NCBI GenBank assembly: GCA_020536535.1 | Contig: JAHLWZ010000839.1 | Span: forward strand, 1 to 64,000 | Source: Pelomyxa schiedti | Lineage: Eukaryota > Protista > Evosea | Length of the DNA: 64,000 nt | Direction: 5' to 3' | In this document: in pieces, positions 35,201 to 41,676 of the stretch | How the letters are laid out: each line of letters begins with the position of its first letter | How positions within the stretch are numbered: position 1 is the stretch's first letter | Made by a program: the position numbers and the translations under genes | The notes under the pieces: model-generated | The model's input: only the letters and a program-made list of their open reading frames with translations | Database searches by the model: none | What the model was told of the DNA's origin: nothing

Positions 35201-37865
35201 CCAGATCCATTGGAAGCTGAGCTCTATGGCACAGGCGGCGTTAAACCGGAAGAGAAGCCCAATAAAGAACCAGTCGTTGCGAGAACTTACTATTGCGTAA
35301 TTGGAAGACAGTCTGGATCCCTTGAAGTATTGGCACTTTAAGTGGCTTTGTTTTTACTTACATTTATAGGTGGTCACTGTACCAGATTTCCAGCGTGTTC
35401 TTTTTACTCCCGACTTCGCTCTGGGACCATATCTCCTCAATTCAACAACCACCAGACCCAGCTCTTTAGCAGCACCCACAAATTCCAGTGACTCCTCGAC
35501 TACCACTTCAGCTTCCACAAGCACCTCAACCTCAACCTCAACCTCAACTTCAACCTCAACTTCAACCAGCAACTTACCTTCACCAAGTACCACACCACTA
35601 TATCCTGTGGAGGTGAGTGTTATTCACCTCTCTCCCCACAAAGTAGCTTACCCACATCTTGTCTCCATTCTAAGCAATGGAGATATCCTCTTTTATCGTG
35701 GTTTTATTTCGTCATCACCAAGTCAAAATTTCCCTCTGGGATTCCATCGCATTAGCCACACCACTCTTCCACGTGACACTCACCCAGCAAGTACCCATGA
35801 TTCTGCCACTGCCCCACACTATCCTAGAATAGCTTTTCTGCCCATTGTGGGAAATGGCAATTGTGCCTTGTTTATTTCTGGGTCCAGGTTCTCACTTAAT
35901 TTAATTTTGTCATGAGTCTCATCTCGTCTATAGACCACTTTGGGGTTTTTGTGACAGAGGATTTCTACGAACATACCCCATGCTACATGATGGAAAAATT
36001 CAGTGCCTGACATCATTCCATAACGAAAACTGTCATAATGGGTTTATTTATTATACTTCAAAGGTTTACTTCTGCTTCTTTTTTTTTTGGTTAAAAACCT
36101 TTGGGCAGTCAGCACTCAAGTTTTGTCAACTTCCTGCATACATGCAATACCAAGGAGACTGGCCAACAAAAAAAATCCCCTTACGTTGCACTCCACATAA
36201 AATCACTTTTCACACGGAATCAAAAATGTATATTTTAGCTGTGTCGTACTCCGTACTTGTTCATTTTGGGGTCACTCCACCTCCCAGTAAGGAACATGTT
36301 ACTACATTCTTTTACCTTACCGAAATACAGCTCCGTATGGCCTGGAAAAACAGGCAACCACTCCTGACCGACCACCGCCTCTACCAATGTTTGTGGAACA
36401 CCACGAACTTCGCCTTATTTCCCCAGCCACATGGGAACAAATGGACCGGTGCAACACCCCACTTTTTGCTTGTCTGGCACCTAACTCATTTTTCCAGTTT
36501 CTCATTGATAGAACGAGAAGTGGTTATAACATTGAGGGTTGTAAACCTCCGGGTCCAACTTCCCGGCACAGCTGATCCTGTCATCAAACCCTATGTCATT
36601 GTTGGAACTGCCATTACAATTCATGAAGATGCAGCCTGCCGTGGAAGGGTATTACTTTTCTCTTCAATCCCTTATCAACATCTTTTCCAGGTGATGGTAT
36701 TTGATATCCAAAAAAAGTCCAACCCAGGGGAATCACCAAAAGCAGTCCTCAATGAAATCTATAGTAAAGAACACAAGGGTCCTGTTTCAGCTGTGGCACA
36801 ACTTGAGGGGTTCTTGATTGTTTCTGTTAACCCGAAGGTACCAGAGCTTCACCACTTTCCAGGTTTTGATATTACTGTAGGTCATTGTGTTCAGTTTTCA
36901 GGATGGGAAGGAGCTTGTGCCAAAAGCCTTCTACGATTTACTTTATATAGTGAGCATTAATACTGTGAAAAATTGGGTTTTACTTGGGGATGCCTACAAA
37001 GGAATTCACTTTTTGAGGTGGAAGGTAATAGAATTCAAGTCAACCCCCTTTGTTAGAAAGCTCACGCGCAACCTTTTTCAGGAACAAGGGAACCAGCTAA
37101 CCCTTCTTGCCAAAGACTTTATTCCCATGTCTGTTTCCTCCACTGATTTCGTCATTGATCAACTTAACTTGGGACTTGTGGTTTCTGATGAAGAGAGGAA
37201 TATATATGTATTTAATTACGCACCGCAAAGTAAGTCTAATTGAAGAGAGACATGGGGTTTGTTTTTTTTCCTAAAACCAAGCAACAAGGTGTGGAAAGTA
37301 GAGGAGGCCAAATGCTTATTGAAAAAGCAAACTTGCATTTGGGTACACGAGTGTCAAAGTTTGTACGACTTCCTCTGCTTGCATCAGCCGATCCCTCATC
37401 AGGCAAACCGACTAGCAGCCGTCATGGAGTATTTTTCAGTATGGAACTCTGTTGAACAAGATGTACACTAACAACCCACCCACAGGCACCATTGATGGCG
37501 GGATAATGTCTCTGCGGCCAGTGGATGAGCGGCTATACAAGGTTCTTCAAGCACTTCAGGTGAAAATGTCCACCGAGGTACAGACTGTTGCCGGTCTGCA
37601 TCCATTAGCTTGGAGGTGAATGGGCCTTACTCTTTAATAGCATTAGCAACCAAAACCCCGAACTGACTCAAACACATAAAGGCACCTTAAAGTTAAAGAC
37701 CCCCAACGCCGGAGTCAGAAGAACATTGCTGATGGCACAATGGTGCGGAATTTCCTCATGTTGCCCTACAATGATCAAGTGTCCCTCTCTGCCCGAATCG
37801 GCACAACTCCCGAAGCCATCTACAACGCCGTACTTGACATTGAAACATCCCTCAACTTTTTCTAA
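32284..37865 (+). CDS. CPSF1: Cleavage and polyadenylation specificity factor subunit 1 (CPSF160)
   Basis: HRATSVHHCVSGHL...NLVLARANILQIY, DSLVVSFADAKVSV, VRDFCFLTGYFEPTLVVLHE...TWAG, CSGHGRNGSL, CLTSFHNENCHNGFIY, WPTKKIPLRCTPH, KEHKGPVSAV, LLGDAYKGIHFLRW, ESRGGQML; ends IGTTPEAIYNAVLDIETSLNFF*. Confidence 0.95.
35523..35567 (+). repeat. (ACYTCA)n hexamer repeat encoding a Thr-Ser tract in a CPSF1 insertion
   Basis: acctcaacctcaacctcaacctcaacttcaacctcaacttcaacc. Confidence 0.85.
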
Positions 37866-37940
37866 ACACCCAGAAAACAAAAAAAACTTGGACATTTGCA
37901 ATCATTGTTTTTCAAGGGAGTACCTTGTAGCACCTGTTTA

Positions 37941-39430
37941 TCAAGACAAATTCTTTGAAATGATCCATCCAACTGCACCACCTATGTCACCTTCTGACCG
38001 CAGGAGAGCAGGAACAATTGTTCTGGGAGGAAAGCCCATGTTATAGAGCTTTGTATGTGAGTTAGTGCAGAGCATTGATGTAGTTATTAGTAGCACCATT
38101 AAGGTGTGGGAGAGGAAAACACCTCTTTTATCTTGTCATCAATTTCCGGTATACTATCCAGCCAAGTGAGAACCTTATCAGCAACTTCCTGAGGGTTCGG
38201 AATCGCTTCACAACGGGGAGGGTATGGCCCCGGTGGTTCAGGCTCCAATGGTGGCTCAGCAACTGGGGTCGCTTCTGTGATAATTGGCCGAGCGCGGACA
38301 ATGAACTCGGAATCGAGGTCAGTGACTGGAACGGAGCCCGTGCAATTTGATGCTATCGATGACACAAGCCAGATAATGCCGGCTTCTGTGCCACTGTTTT
38401 GAAGGCAGCTGCAAGGTTGTATATACCACTTCCGTGCATCGAGCTGGATATGTGACTGTCTGATGAACTGAATGATGGTCCATGTTTTTACACAATTGTC
38501 CATATCCTGCTTGTTGGCGAGAATCAGAACGGGAACTGGAGCAGTCTTGCTGGCTGCTGCTTCCAAGTCCATGTCACGTAGTACCTCCTTCAGCTCTAAA
38601 ATTGAATCTTGCAGACGAGTTCGGTCCGAGGCATCAATAACCCAAATTAGGCCATTTGTACCAGAATAATAGTGCTTCCATAGCTGTCTAATCTTGGTTT
38701 ATATTTCCGTTTGAATAGAATAACTTTGGAAGTGAGGGATACCAGGGGTTGGCCACCAACATCCCAGAGAACAACCTCCCCACCAACGGTGTACATGGTC
38801 TCGACATTGAATCTAAATAAGTGTTATTCAGAGAAAAAGAAAAAAAAAGTGAAAACGTACCCAATTGTTGGTATTGTAGTTATAAATTCATTTAGCTTGA
38901 GAGTGTACAAAATTTGTGTCTTGCCAGCTTGCTCGATACCAAGAATTAGTACCCTCATTGTTCCAGATACTTGTGTCTTGGTTGCCACCGTACTAAAGTC
39001 ATCATATTAGCTTCCTACCTTACCCACATAGCATCAGTCAATTATCCAATTACACATAAAGCACAAGGGCTGGTGTAACATCTTCAAACAAGGAGCTGCT
39101 ATTATTAAACCACAACCATAGAGCAGAATAGAAACATAAGAAAGAACAATAGAAGCAAACAAACCCAAAGCCGCTGTTCTGGGCGGCGCTAAACTGCCTC
39201 CACGCAGGCACCAAGTTGGGCGCGAGGGGCAAATCGACCAAGAAAGAGGATCTGTAGAGGGCCGACCACAGGTCGTCGTCGAGGCACGCGGCCCTGAGCC
39301 TCTTGGACGCCGTGCCGACGCGGACGACGTGGCGGACGCCGTCGGGGCCGCCGGAGCAGAAGACGATGCGCAAGATGCGGTGCAGGATGGCCGTGGGCAG
39401 CTGCTCCAGATTATGGGAGGCACCACTCAT
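37941..39430 (-). CDS. F-box / Arf-family GTPase / UBA three-domain protein
   Basis: N-terminal F-box-like [16 protein letters not shown]...[18 protein letters not shown]; Arf [33 protein letters not shown]|FNVET...WDVGGQ...[27 protein letters not shown]...LANKQD...WYIQPCSC; last exon IKE|[30 protein letters not shown] (UBA MGF motif); TGA 37943-37941. Confidence 0.82.
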
Positions 39431-39630
39431 TGCGGACGAGAAACGACGGTTCGTAGTTTACGTTCGTTGTTATTCGAAATTGATGGATCTTCCGGAACGG
39501 TGGAGAGACTAACAGGCTCAGGAGTAATGGGAGAATGATCGGAATTAGACTGGGTGTTCTCAATTTGGAAAGGGCAGGGCAAGAATGCCAGTACGGAGCG
39601 GAAGTAGAAAGTTACCGAAATTAATCGAGG

Positions 39631-41676
39631 ATGGGAGACAAGGACTACTTTGTTGTCATTGACTTCGAGGCCACATGCGAGGATGGGGTGAAAGTAGTCC
39701 CACAAGTACTTCTCTTCCCTTTGCCCCGTCCCAGCGAAAATGCCCACACATTCCCTGTTTCTATTGCCAGGAGATAATTGAATTCACGTCAGTGCTGATC
39801 AATGCACGTAGTCTTGCAACTGAGGGGGAATTTCACACATTCGTTAGGCCTCAAGTGCACCCTGTTCTGACCCCGTTTTGCCAGCAACTGACTGGAATTA
39901 CCCAACAAAATGTTGACTCTGGTATCCCTATTGATGAGGTTTTTTTTTTTTTTTACACTTTTGGTGGTTGCCTATTGAGAACAACATTTAGGTACTGCAG
40001 AGACACAGAGAATGGATGGAGCAACACCAATTGATACAATCACAAACTGGGGTTCCTGCCAAATTCTCGTGAGTTACCATTGACACAACTCGATTCTTAG
40101 AGCTTCTTGCTTGGGGTGTTTTCCTAACAAGTCTATTCAGATTCAAATTTGTAACTTGTGGGTTTTGGCCTCTGGGAGTGTGCCTGCCTCATCTGTGTAA
40201 AGACTTGAACATTCATCTGCCTCCTTACTTCGCCGAGAGTGTCATGAATGTGAAAGAAGAGTTCACGCGACACTACCACAAGCAGGCGAACGGCGGTATA
40301 CCTGATATGATGGCCGCCCTTGAAATGCAACTTCAGGGTCGCCATCACTGTGGCATTGACGATGCGAGAAATGTGGCGCGGATCCTTGTGAGAATGATCA
40401 ATGATGGTTACCATCACACTCCGGTGTCTGCGCCAACCACTACATCCAGTACCTCCGCTGCAGAGGCACCTACTTCTCGGTACAAATAATCATCCCTGCT
40501 TCAAACACCAACAAGCATATAATGGAATGCCATTCATTTCCCTGATCTTGCCCAGTGCCTGCCTGTTCAATTACCTTGTGGTTGTGGATCTAGAAGCCAC
40601 TTGTGACGAAGGAAATCCTCCGTTGGTCACCCAAGAGACCCAGGAAGTTATTGAGTTTCCTTGGGTTGTTGTGGAAACCACACACTGGACTGTGGTTGAT
40701 GAACAAAGATTTTTTGTAAAACCAACAAGTATGCAACGTTTCTTTTTTGACCCTGGGTTGTTTCCAGTATTTCCCCTGATTCCATTACACAGTGATACCT
40801 ATGGTTACCCCATTCTGCACTCATCTGACAGGAATAACTGAGACCGATTTGGTTGATGCCAAGCCTCTTGCTGCTGTGTTAGAAGCATTCGCACAGTATT
40901 GCTTGACGAATTTCACTGCTAAAAATCTGTCTTACTGTCTCCTTTGCGATGGAAAATGGGACTTGGAAGTCATGCTCCGCGGTGAGTGCTTTAGGAAGGG
41001 GCTAGTGCCAATCGCACCCCACTTCAACAAATACTTTGATCTCAAGACAGAGTTCTCCCTACTCACCGGAAACCCCAAGACGCCCCTCCACAAGATGCTC
41101 TACTTCTTCAAACTTTCACACATAGGAAAACCTCACAGCGGAATTGATGACTGCAAGACCATCGCTTCCGTAGTTTCTGCCATTGCCAATTCCACCCTCG
41201 AAGGCAGGACCAGAACATTCCAGAGCCCAACTGAAATCCCCCCCACATACGATCCCAGAACTGACACTACACTGAAAGACTTCAACCTAACCCGCCCCTC
41301 AACCGGTTCTTTTCATAAACTTCCCACCCAAACCACTACCACATCTTCCTCTGCTTGTGCTTCTACTGCCACAGCTACAGCTACTTCCACTTCTGCCGCT
41401 TCTCCTGCTTCTGCCAGTGGCCCATCTCCATTCCTAGTACTGAGAGGACTCCCATGGGCCGCCACTGAGGACCAAGTTAGGGGCTTCCTCTCAGAATTCG
41501 ACATAGTCCGCATGCAAATACTCATGAACGCGGCTGGTCGCCCCAGTGGATTGTGCCATGTCCAATTGAAAACCCCCGAACAAGCAGTGCAAGCAATTGC
41601 CACACGTCACAGGGCCAACATGGGTCACAGATACATTGAAGTAATGCCCATACCCTCCTGTACCTTCACAAACTAA
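39631..41676 (+). CDS. Tandem ERI1/3'hExo-like DEDDh exonuclease domains plus C-terminal hnRNP F/H-type (q)RRM
   Basis: Domain 1 VVIDFEATC...EIIEF...FHTFVRP...LTPFCQQLTGITQ...GRHHCGIDDARN; a GT-AG intron (about 40480-40555) joins in frame to domain 2 VVVDLEATCD...EVIEFP...CDGKWDL...GKPHSGIDDCKT; RRM LVLRGLPWAATEDQV...GRPSG...MGHRYIEV. Confidence 0.88.

Follow-up and report, generated by a model that had tools for sequence, protein, structure and literature searches.

Small GTPases and cullin-RING ligases count among the main switching systems of eukaryotic cells; few direct fusions of the two exist, and these have hardly been studied. The animal protein FBXO4 (Fbx4) is a substrate receptor of the Skp1–Cul1–F-box (SCF) ubiquitin ligase that carries an atypical small GTPase domain, and it binds its substrate through this GTPase fold (PMC7086354). 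In TRIM23/ARD1 an E3 module is fused to a near-canonical Arf domain, so that RING, B-box, coiled coil and C-terminal Arf lie in one protein that is itself the ligase. A survey of the ARF family (Vargova et al. 2021, PMC8358228) further lists proteins combining F-box and ARF domains in Acanthamoeba, Physarum, Mastigamoeba and Thecamonas; its F-box entries are AcaArf1i, AcaArf1l, AcaArlX2, AcaArf1g and PpoArlX5, together with MbaArf1e/f, which also carry RCC1. Its authors regard ARF fusions with F-box or BTB domains as recurrent recruitment into ubiquitin circuits, and the amoebozoan F-box–ARF fusions, which are lineage-specific, are known only as entries of a survey table. Here we describe a gene of the anaerobic amoebozoan Pelomyxa schiedti that encodes an F-box, an Arf domain and a UBA (ubiquitin-associated) domain, in this order. 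It lies on the minus strand, from 39430 to 37941, of the window, i.e. the whole stretch of 64,000 nucleotides that was analysed (contig JAHLWZ010000839.1, positions 1 to 64,000), and its product is deposited as KAH3755906.1.

The P. schiedti protein shares with FBXO4 the F-box and the small-GTPase fold; the FBXO4 domain is atypical and has no UBA domain beside it, whereas the G motifs are intact here. The Arf domain of TRIM23 is among its best sequence matches (40–47% identity), but TRIM23 is itself a ligase and KAH3755906.1, in which a Pfam scan at expectation values (E) up to 0.1 detected neither RING nor B-box, would need Skp1–Cul1–Rbx1. None of the amoebozoan F-box–ARF fusions in the accessible part of the survey is listed with a UBA domain, unlike KAH3755906.1, and UBA has no occurrence in that part of the survey table. 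An earlier reading of the locus from its letters (the sequence-only reading) had named TRIM23/ARD1 as the characterised fusion of an E3 with Arf, which passes over FBXO4, an SCF receptor in which the small-GTPase domain is atypical (PMC7086354). It had also taken the whole architecture to be undescribed; this does not hold for the F-box–Arf part, already catalogued in PMC8358228, and it stands for the three-part form with a UBA domain, of which we found no other example. The F-box–Arf fusion is already known; the UBA tail, the absent RCC1 and the intact switch are new. Judged from its sequence, KAH3755906.1 appears to be the cleanest case, with an apparently fully competent GTPase to which a domain of ubiquitin-binding type is attached. 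We favour, at a probability of about 0.5, the reading that it is a soluble SCF (Skp1–Cul1) receptor or adaptor with a partner-binding Arf module that cycles GTP and a UBA domain that binds ubiquitin.

The gene consists of five exons, the borders of which were read from the sequence before RNA was brought in:

39165–39430, minus strand: exon 1, F-box and first part of the linker; ATG at 39430–39428; ends in phase 2; residues 1–88
39251–39406, minus strand: F-box, residues 9–60, placed by Pfam, hhalign and the predicted Skp1 interface
38993–39164, minus strand: intron 1, 172 nt, GT..AG; spliced out in RNA contig X2, contained in DNA contig X4
38861–38992, minus strand: exon 2, hydrophilic remainder of the N-terminus of Arf, then strand 1, the P-loop (G1) and switch I as far as TIG; residues 90–132
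38813–38860, minus strand: intron 2, 48 nt, GT..AG; spliced out in RNA contigs of X1 and X2
38743–38812, minus strand: exon 3, hairpin of the interswitch, then G3 (WDVGGQ, with Gln154 as the catalytic residue); Pfam Arf positions 48–68
38693–38742, minus strand: intron 3, 50 nt, GT..AG; spliced out in RNA contigs of X1, X2 and X3
38123–38692, minus strand: exon 4, rest of Arf, proline-rich linker, one extra helix and UBA helix 1; residues 157–346
38049–38122, minus strand: intron 4, 74 nt, GT..AG, interrupting the UBA domain; spliced out in RNA contigs of each of the three RNA runs
37941–38048, minus strand: exon 5, UBA MGF loop and helices 2 and 3, TGA at 37943–37941; candidate UBA by sub-cut-off Pfam matches and hhalign
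37895–37940, minus strand: 3′ untranslated end, minimum extent; RNA contig X1 record 2 begins at 37895, and the contigs cannot fix the transcript end

No start codon lies between the ATG at 39430 and an in-frame stop 8 codons upstream of it. A codon split as GG|T at intron 1 yields Gly89, and a second split codon yields Gly133. Exon 4 contains the NKQD motif and the C-S-C motif of G5, and the Arf domain ends within it at 38357. In the resulting protein of 381 residues the F-box (9–60) is followed by a short linker, the Arf domain (approximately 96–268), a proline-rich linker and the UBA domain (approximately 341–375). GenBank names the protein "ADP ribosylation factor 6 [Pelomyxa schiedti]" and annotates neither F-box nor UBA in the record. 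Every exon piece of the window was placed in KAH3755906.1 with zero mismatches, and exon 4 is identical throughout (phmmer); the window sequence was searched exon by exon, and the whole-protein analyses used the public record. The single-cell assembly of P. schiedti comprises 52.4 Mb in 5337 scaffolds, and the depositors annotated it with Augustus, PASA and EVM.

We examined transcription in the assembled contigs of one study, from three single-cell RNA-seq runs and a DNA run, placed on 37500–40000. The joint 38048/38123 occurs in three RNA runs, as does 38692/38743; 38812/38861 is present in two of them and 38992/39165 in one. A single RNA contig of 1019 nt, extending over 37967–39329, crosses all four joints and links the F-box, Arf and UBA exons. 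At the joint of exons 1 and 2 (39165/38992), RNA contig X2 has 165 and 132 nt on its two sides, and the window is matched colinearly by DNA contig X4. Retention of intron 4 was seen in none of the RNA contigs from the three runs. One expressed gene encodes F-box, Arf and UBA in one polypeptide. The gene model of the sequence-only reading was reproduced to the base, and its claim that the UBA domain emerges only once the intron 38122/38049 is removed agrees with the presence of this splice in all three RNA runs. The 1019-nt contig, which joins the three kinds of exon, covers the interval from 39170 to 38000 for which it had proposed an RNA comparison, and the 38992/39165 joint places the F-box exon and Arf on one transcript.

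Against Pfam Arf (PF00025) the whole protein scores 164.9 bits, and the exons searched singly score 36.6 (exon 2), 12.5 (exon 3) and 87.2 bits (exon 4). Its best solved relatives are human Arf6 (145 bits), then Arf5 and Arf1, and the G domain is 42–43% identical to Arf6. All motifs from G1 to G5 are kept relative to Arf6, namely the P-loop GKT, the switch I Thr131, DVGGQ154, NKQD219 and C-S-C; the interswitch aligns without gaps, and the length differs from Arf6 only by 7 residues inserted ahead of strand 5 and 2 inserted further on. AlphaFold2 models residues ~100–270 with predicted local distance difference test (pLDDT) values above 90, and a Foldseek search with the Arf model returned template-modelling scores of 0.86–0.89 to Arf6, Arf1 and Arl1. 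The motifs listed beforehand from the letters (GxxxAGKT, PTIGFNVE, WDVGGQ with the catalytic Gln, NKQD) are all present.

In the alignment with Arf6, the first aligned residue of Arf6 is number 2, which faces Gly89, and the codon of Gly89 is divided by intron 1; therefore, the F-box exon has been grafted exactly onto the start of the Arf frame. Exon 2 opens at Arf position 2 and offers no start codon ahead of Met101. The region of the amphipathic helix of Arf is reduced to an 11-residue hydrophilic remnant without a hydrophobic face. Since the glycine equivalent to Arf6 Gly2 is internal (residue 89), it cannot be myristoylated; the protein begins with Met-Ser, and its C-terminus has no lipidation motif. 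From this sequence, neither myristoylation nor helix-mediated membrane binding is expected. The previously noted lack of the N-terminal helix is correct in that a myristoylated helix is absent and incorrect in that the region is not deleted: the remnant is there, with Gly89 opposite Arf6 Gly2.

The first exon was recognised as F-box-like by three approaches, in keeping with its first description. In the Pfam search (PF12937/PF00646), exon 1 by itself scores 25.5 bits as F-box-like at a cut-off of 24.3. By hhalign, residues 9–59 match a profile of 16 F-box pieces from the same genome with a probability of 92% (E 6.5e-7, 44 columns); the loop between helices 1 and 2 holds a 7-residue insertion. 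For the third approach, residues 1–95 were folded with a Skp1 of the same species (P0261, matching the exons of locus C76). The predicted complex reached a score of 0.83, compared to 0.00 for the best of three controls; the mark set for this score is attained by 51 of 78 solved complexes and by 2 of 108 mismatched pairs. Contact agreement between runs was at least 87%, the pLDDT of the partner was at least 82, and the predicted interface brings together Skp1 residues 100–165, its canonical C-terminal helices, with F-box residues 5–46. At least five loci match the C-terminal domain of Skp1 (C76, C911, C832, C165 and C1244), each split into many short exons, and F-box families could differ in the Skp1 paralogue with which they pair.

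The tail is a UBA candidate below the Pfam cut-offs. Exon 5 by itself matches Pfam UBA_7 at 19.4 and UBA at 16.3 bits, both under cut-off because helix 1 of the domain sits in exon 4. Compared by hhalign with a profile of 16 UBA pieces from P. schiedti itself, residues 341–375 match with a probability of 93% (E 3.2e-7, 35 columns), so that the helix-MGF-helix pattern first seen in the last exon is recognised as UBA-type even though Pfam stays below its cut-off. Five of the six weak sequence matches in the PDB (E 0.09–0.9) are UBA domains, those of Mud1, Ddi1, ubiquilin-4, Rad23A and USP13. AlphaFold2 predicts tail helices at 338–349, 354–363 and 367–380, and a single-sequence model of residues 318–381 has a pLDDT of 78. 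The linker between Arf and UBA is proline-rich and predicted to be disordered, with pLDDT below 50 at 276–301 (AlphaFold2).

Under the favoured reading, the F-box would dock on Skp1 and thereby on Cul1–Rbx1, and the Arf domain would form the partner-binding end, binding and hydrolysing GTP. The latter activities we infer from the intact G1–G5 motifs and the catalytic Gln. The switch and interswitch surfaces would recruit partners in one nucleotide state only. The UBA domain would bind ubiquitin on (i) the substrate, (ii) the receptor itself or (iii) the ligase, and could keep modified substrates near the ligase or shield the receptor from its own turnover. The gating of partner recruitment by nucleotide state, taken by itself, is a tentative and rather unlikely part of this scheme. 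We consider it doubtful that the complete sequence of events applies, i.e. a nucleotide-gated SCF receptor in which partners of the GTP state are handed to Skp1–Cul1 and the UBA domain then holds the ubiquitinated product or the ligase. If true, such a receptor would be the working-switch counterpart of the GTPase-fold receptor FBXO4 and would hint at an old link between the amoebal F-box–Arf fusions and animal FBXO4. KAH3755906.1 lends itself, as a compact natural construct, to the question of whether the delivery of substrates to an SCF ligase can be gated by nucleotide state.

Several points weigh against a GTP-cycling SCF receptor with a ubiquitin-binding tail. The GTPase-fold domain of FBXO4 is not known to act as a switch. 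With the whole protein as query, the F-box score falls to 20.2 bits, under the Pfam cut-off of 24.3, and the UBA scores are 14.7 (PF00627, cut-off 22.4) and 18.1 (UBA_7, PF22562, cut-off 27). In the AlphaFold2 model the F-box has a pLDDT below 50, because the underlying alignment is nearly confined to the Arf part, and in the F-box it is covered only by two near-identical Acanthamoeba sequences. The score of the predicted Skp1 complex may mirror the many solved Skp1–F-box complexes; it reports likeness to a working F-box, not binding. The structural model of the tail, when searched with Foldseek, gave nothing below E 3 and no UBA, and VIA-align gave generic helical matches only (best Z 5.5), again with no UBA among them. 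The joint of exons 1 and 2 rests on one RNA contig, and the start codon is reached by none. No orthologue was found in the protein searches run, leaving no conservation argument for function. FBXO4, the sole characterised F-box protein with a GTPase fold, has a domain that is described as atypical (PMC7086354). The SCF role, the nucleotide cycling and the ubiquitin binding are all predicted from sequence and models; together with the missing orthologue, the lack of a close paralogue and an organism that is hard to grow, this limits the weight of the case.

One alternative, which we hold to be unlikely, makes Arf the working end of the protein and leaves to F-box and UBA the control of the protein's own fate or location. 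Skp1 might then be bound outside a full SCF complex, the protein might be self-ubiquitinated with the UBA domain slowing its degradation, or it might be recruited to ubiquitinated cargo. The near-canonical G domain of Arf1/6 type, with its 42–43% identity to Arf6, is in line with this, and there are precedents for each of the flanking modules: some F-box proteins act with Skp1 outside SCF, as yeast Rcy1 does in recycling, and UBA domains can stabilise the proteins that carry them, as in Rad23. Against it stands the missing membrane anchor, with Ser at position 2, Gly89 internal, a hydrophilic helix remnant and no C-terminal lipidation motif, which makes classic Arf action on membranes unlikely.

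A second alternative, which we hold to be doubtful, is a static SCF receptor of FBXO4 type in which the Arf fold serves as a fixed binding surface and nucleotide state is irrelevant to the choice of substrate. The nearest neighbours of KAH3755906.1 in the ESM Atlas are clusters of FBXO4 (score 0.80, a lead only), and other amoebal F-box–Arf copies have lost motifs, XP_004352785.1 having Leu for the catalytic Gln. KAH3755906.1, however, retains G1–G5, the switch I Thr, the catalytic Gln and a gapless interswitch, and intact motifs are the pattern expected from purifying selection on nucleotide binding and hydrolysis. Two further results touch on FBXO4: in one mollusc FBXO4-like cluster of the ESM Atlas 65% of the members carry Pfam Arf, again a lead only, and the F-box of FBXO4 matches that of the Acanthamoeba fusion marginally (E 1.6).

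Finally, it is very improbable that the F-box exon and the Arf–UBA part belong to two genes or were joined by mis-assembly, or that the UBA exon is unused: a single RNA contig crosses intron 1, and the GC content at third codon positions (GC3) is 0.89 in exon 1 against 0.47, but an in-frame GT..AG splice with flanks of 165 and 132 nt is not a joint that assembly errors make, DNA contig and window are colinear, three runs show the UBA splice with no contig retaining the intron, the depositors' PASA/EVM annotation gives the same model, and exon 2, lacking a start codon before Met101, opens at Arf position 2.

We return to the favoured SCF receptor and to its relatives in other organisms. A phmmer search of exon 4 against 1.84 billion representative proteins found only KAH3755906.1 below 1e-30; the next matches are tandem-Arf proteins with scores inflated by two domains. 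Local phmmer searches of the F-box, tail and UBA segments against 226 relatives gave nothing at E up to 10. Among 59 relatives extended at the N- or C-terminus, a Pfam scan identified one F-box carrier, an Acanthamoeba cluster, and no UBA in the 25 of 30 families listed; the other domains on these extended relatives are BTB, TM2, ion channel, RING and 2OG oxygenase. A profile word search with KAH3755906.1 and AcaArf1l, limited to the best 8000 candidates by shared words, yielded no further F-box–Arf protein and none with UBA, and no other protein combining Arf and UBA was found in the protein searches run. In a tree of 113 Arf domains, KAH3755906.1 stands on a long branch (0.8) and in no supported clade, and the tree does not unite it with AcaArf1l.

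The fusion AcaArf1l (XP_004352785.1) falls in the cluster of match P0117, in which an F-box-like match of 47 bits is followed by Arf. Like KAH3755906.1, it has an N-terminal F-box and then Arf, and the two align over both domains with 34% identity. It differs from KAH3755906.1 in its long disordered N-terminus, a linker of ~70 residues, Leu for the catalytic Gln and a tail of 20 residues. Among the near Arf relatives are also three metagenomic or unnamed proteins (P0113, P0089 and P0085), comprising one fusion of an ion channel with Arf and two of BTB with Arf. By their sequences, the BTB–Arf fusions appear to add to the picture of Arf joined to cullin-adaptor modules.

The P. schiedti genome holds dozens of Arf loci and 148 or more F-box-like matches, but no second close copy of the F-box exon and no close paralogue of the gene. 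In at least ten loci an Arf match is preceded, 1.1–1.3 kb upstream and on the same strand, by an F-box-like match, compared to a chance expectation of roughly 0.2:

Contigs C524, C782, C3, C567, C952, C912, C82, C875, C183 and C824, same strand: F-box–Arf loci of P. schiedti, from Pfam cross-matching

Between the F-box and Arf matches of these loci, tblastn places exons with P-loop, switch I and NKQD in order. RCC1 repeats lie further upstream in eight of the ten and in the similar locus C881; none were scored at C875 and C952. These copies, together with MbaArf1e/f and AcaArf1g, form an RCC1–F-box–Arf family of Archamoebae and Acanthamoeba that has the order of F-box and then Arf in common with the F-box–Arf–UBA gene. 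Compared to the latter, the Arf domains of the RCC1–F-box–Arf loci are more diverged, at E 1e-4 to 1e-12 against exon 4, the best plain-Arf-like match being at 1e-13. No RCC1 (PF00415) is among the matches scored on contig C839, and the open reading frame of the F-box–Arf–UBA gene begins 8 codons past a stop and ~200 bp from a divergent neighbour gene that starts at 39631. No Pfam UBA was found near the other F-box–Arf loci, at a threshold under which the UBA domain of KAH3755906.1 itself also falls and which weak UBA domains could escape. As far as these sequences tell, KAH3755906.1 differs from the sister family by having no RCC1, a less degenerate G domain and the sole detectable UBA domain.

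Further contigs group with the RCC1–F-box–Arf family (C896, C987, C924, C120, C860, C744 and C843), and several of its loci have no recognisable DxxGQ in the tblastn pieces. The F-box pieces of the ten sister loci have a GC content of 0.39–0.61. In the gene described here, exon 1 has a GC content of 0.66 and a GC3 of 0.89, compared to a GC3 of 0.47 in exon 4 and 0.37 in exon 5 and a mean GC content of 0.44 in the window. This sharp break in composition at the domain border may mean that exon 1 was grafted on recently, or that a local effect acts at the 5′ end.

Two other P. schiedti proteins join Arf to additional sequence: P0118, named "ADP-ribosylation factor 1" in GenBank (405 residues), has a TM2 transmembrane domain followed by Arf, and P0358 (798 residues) has two tandem Arf domains and then a long C-terminal extension. 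Downstream of the gene, a convergent neighbour is transcribed from the plus strand over 37500–37867, and one RNA contig shows a 66-nt GT..AG intron in it at 37614–37679. The 20 loose letters that follow at 37867 resemble a library adapter rather than biology.

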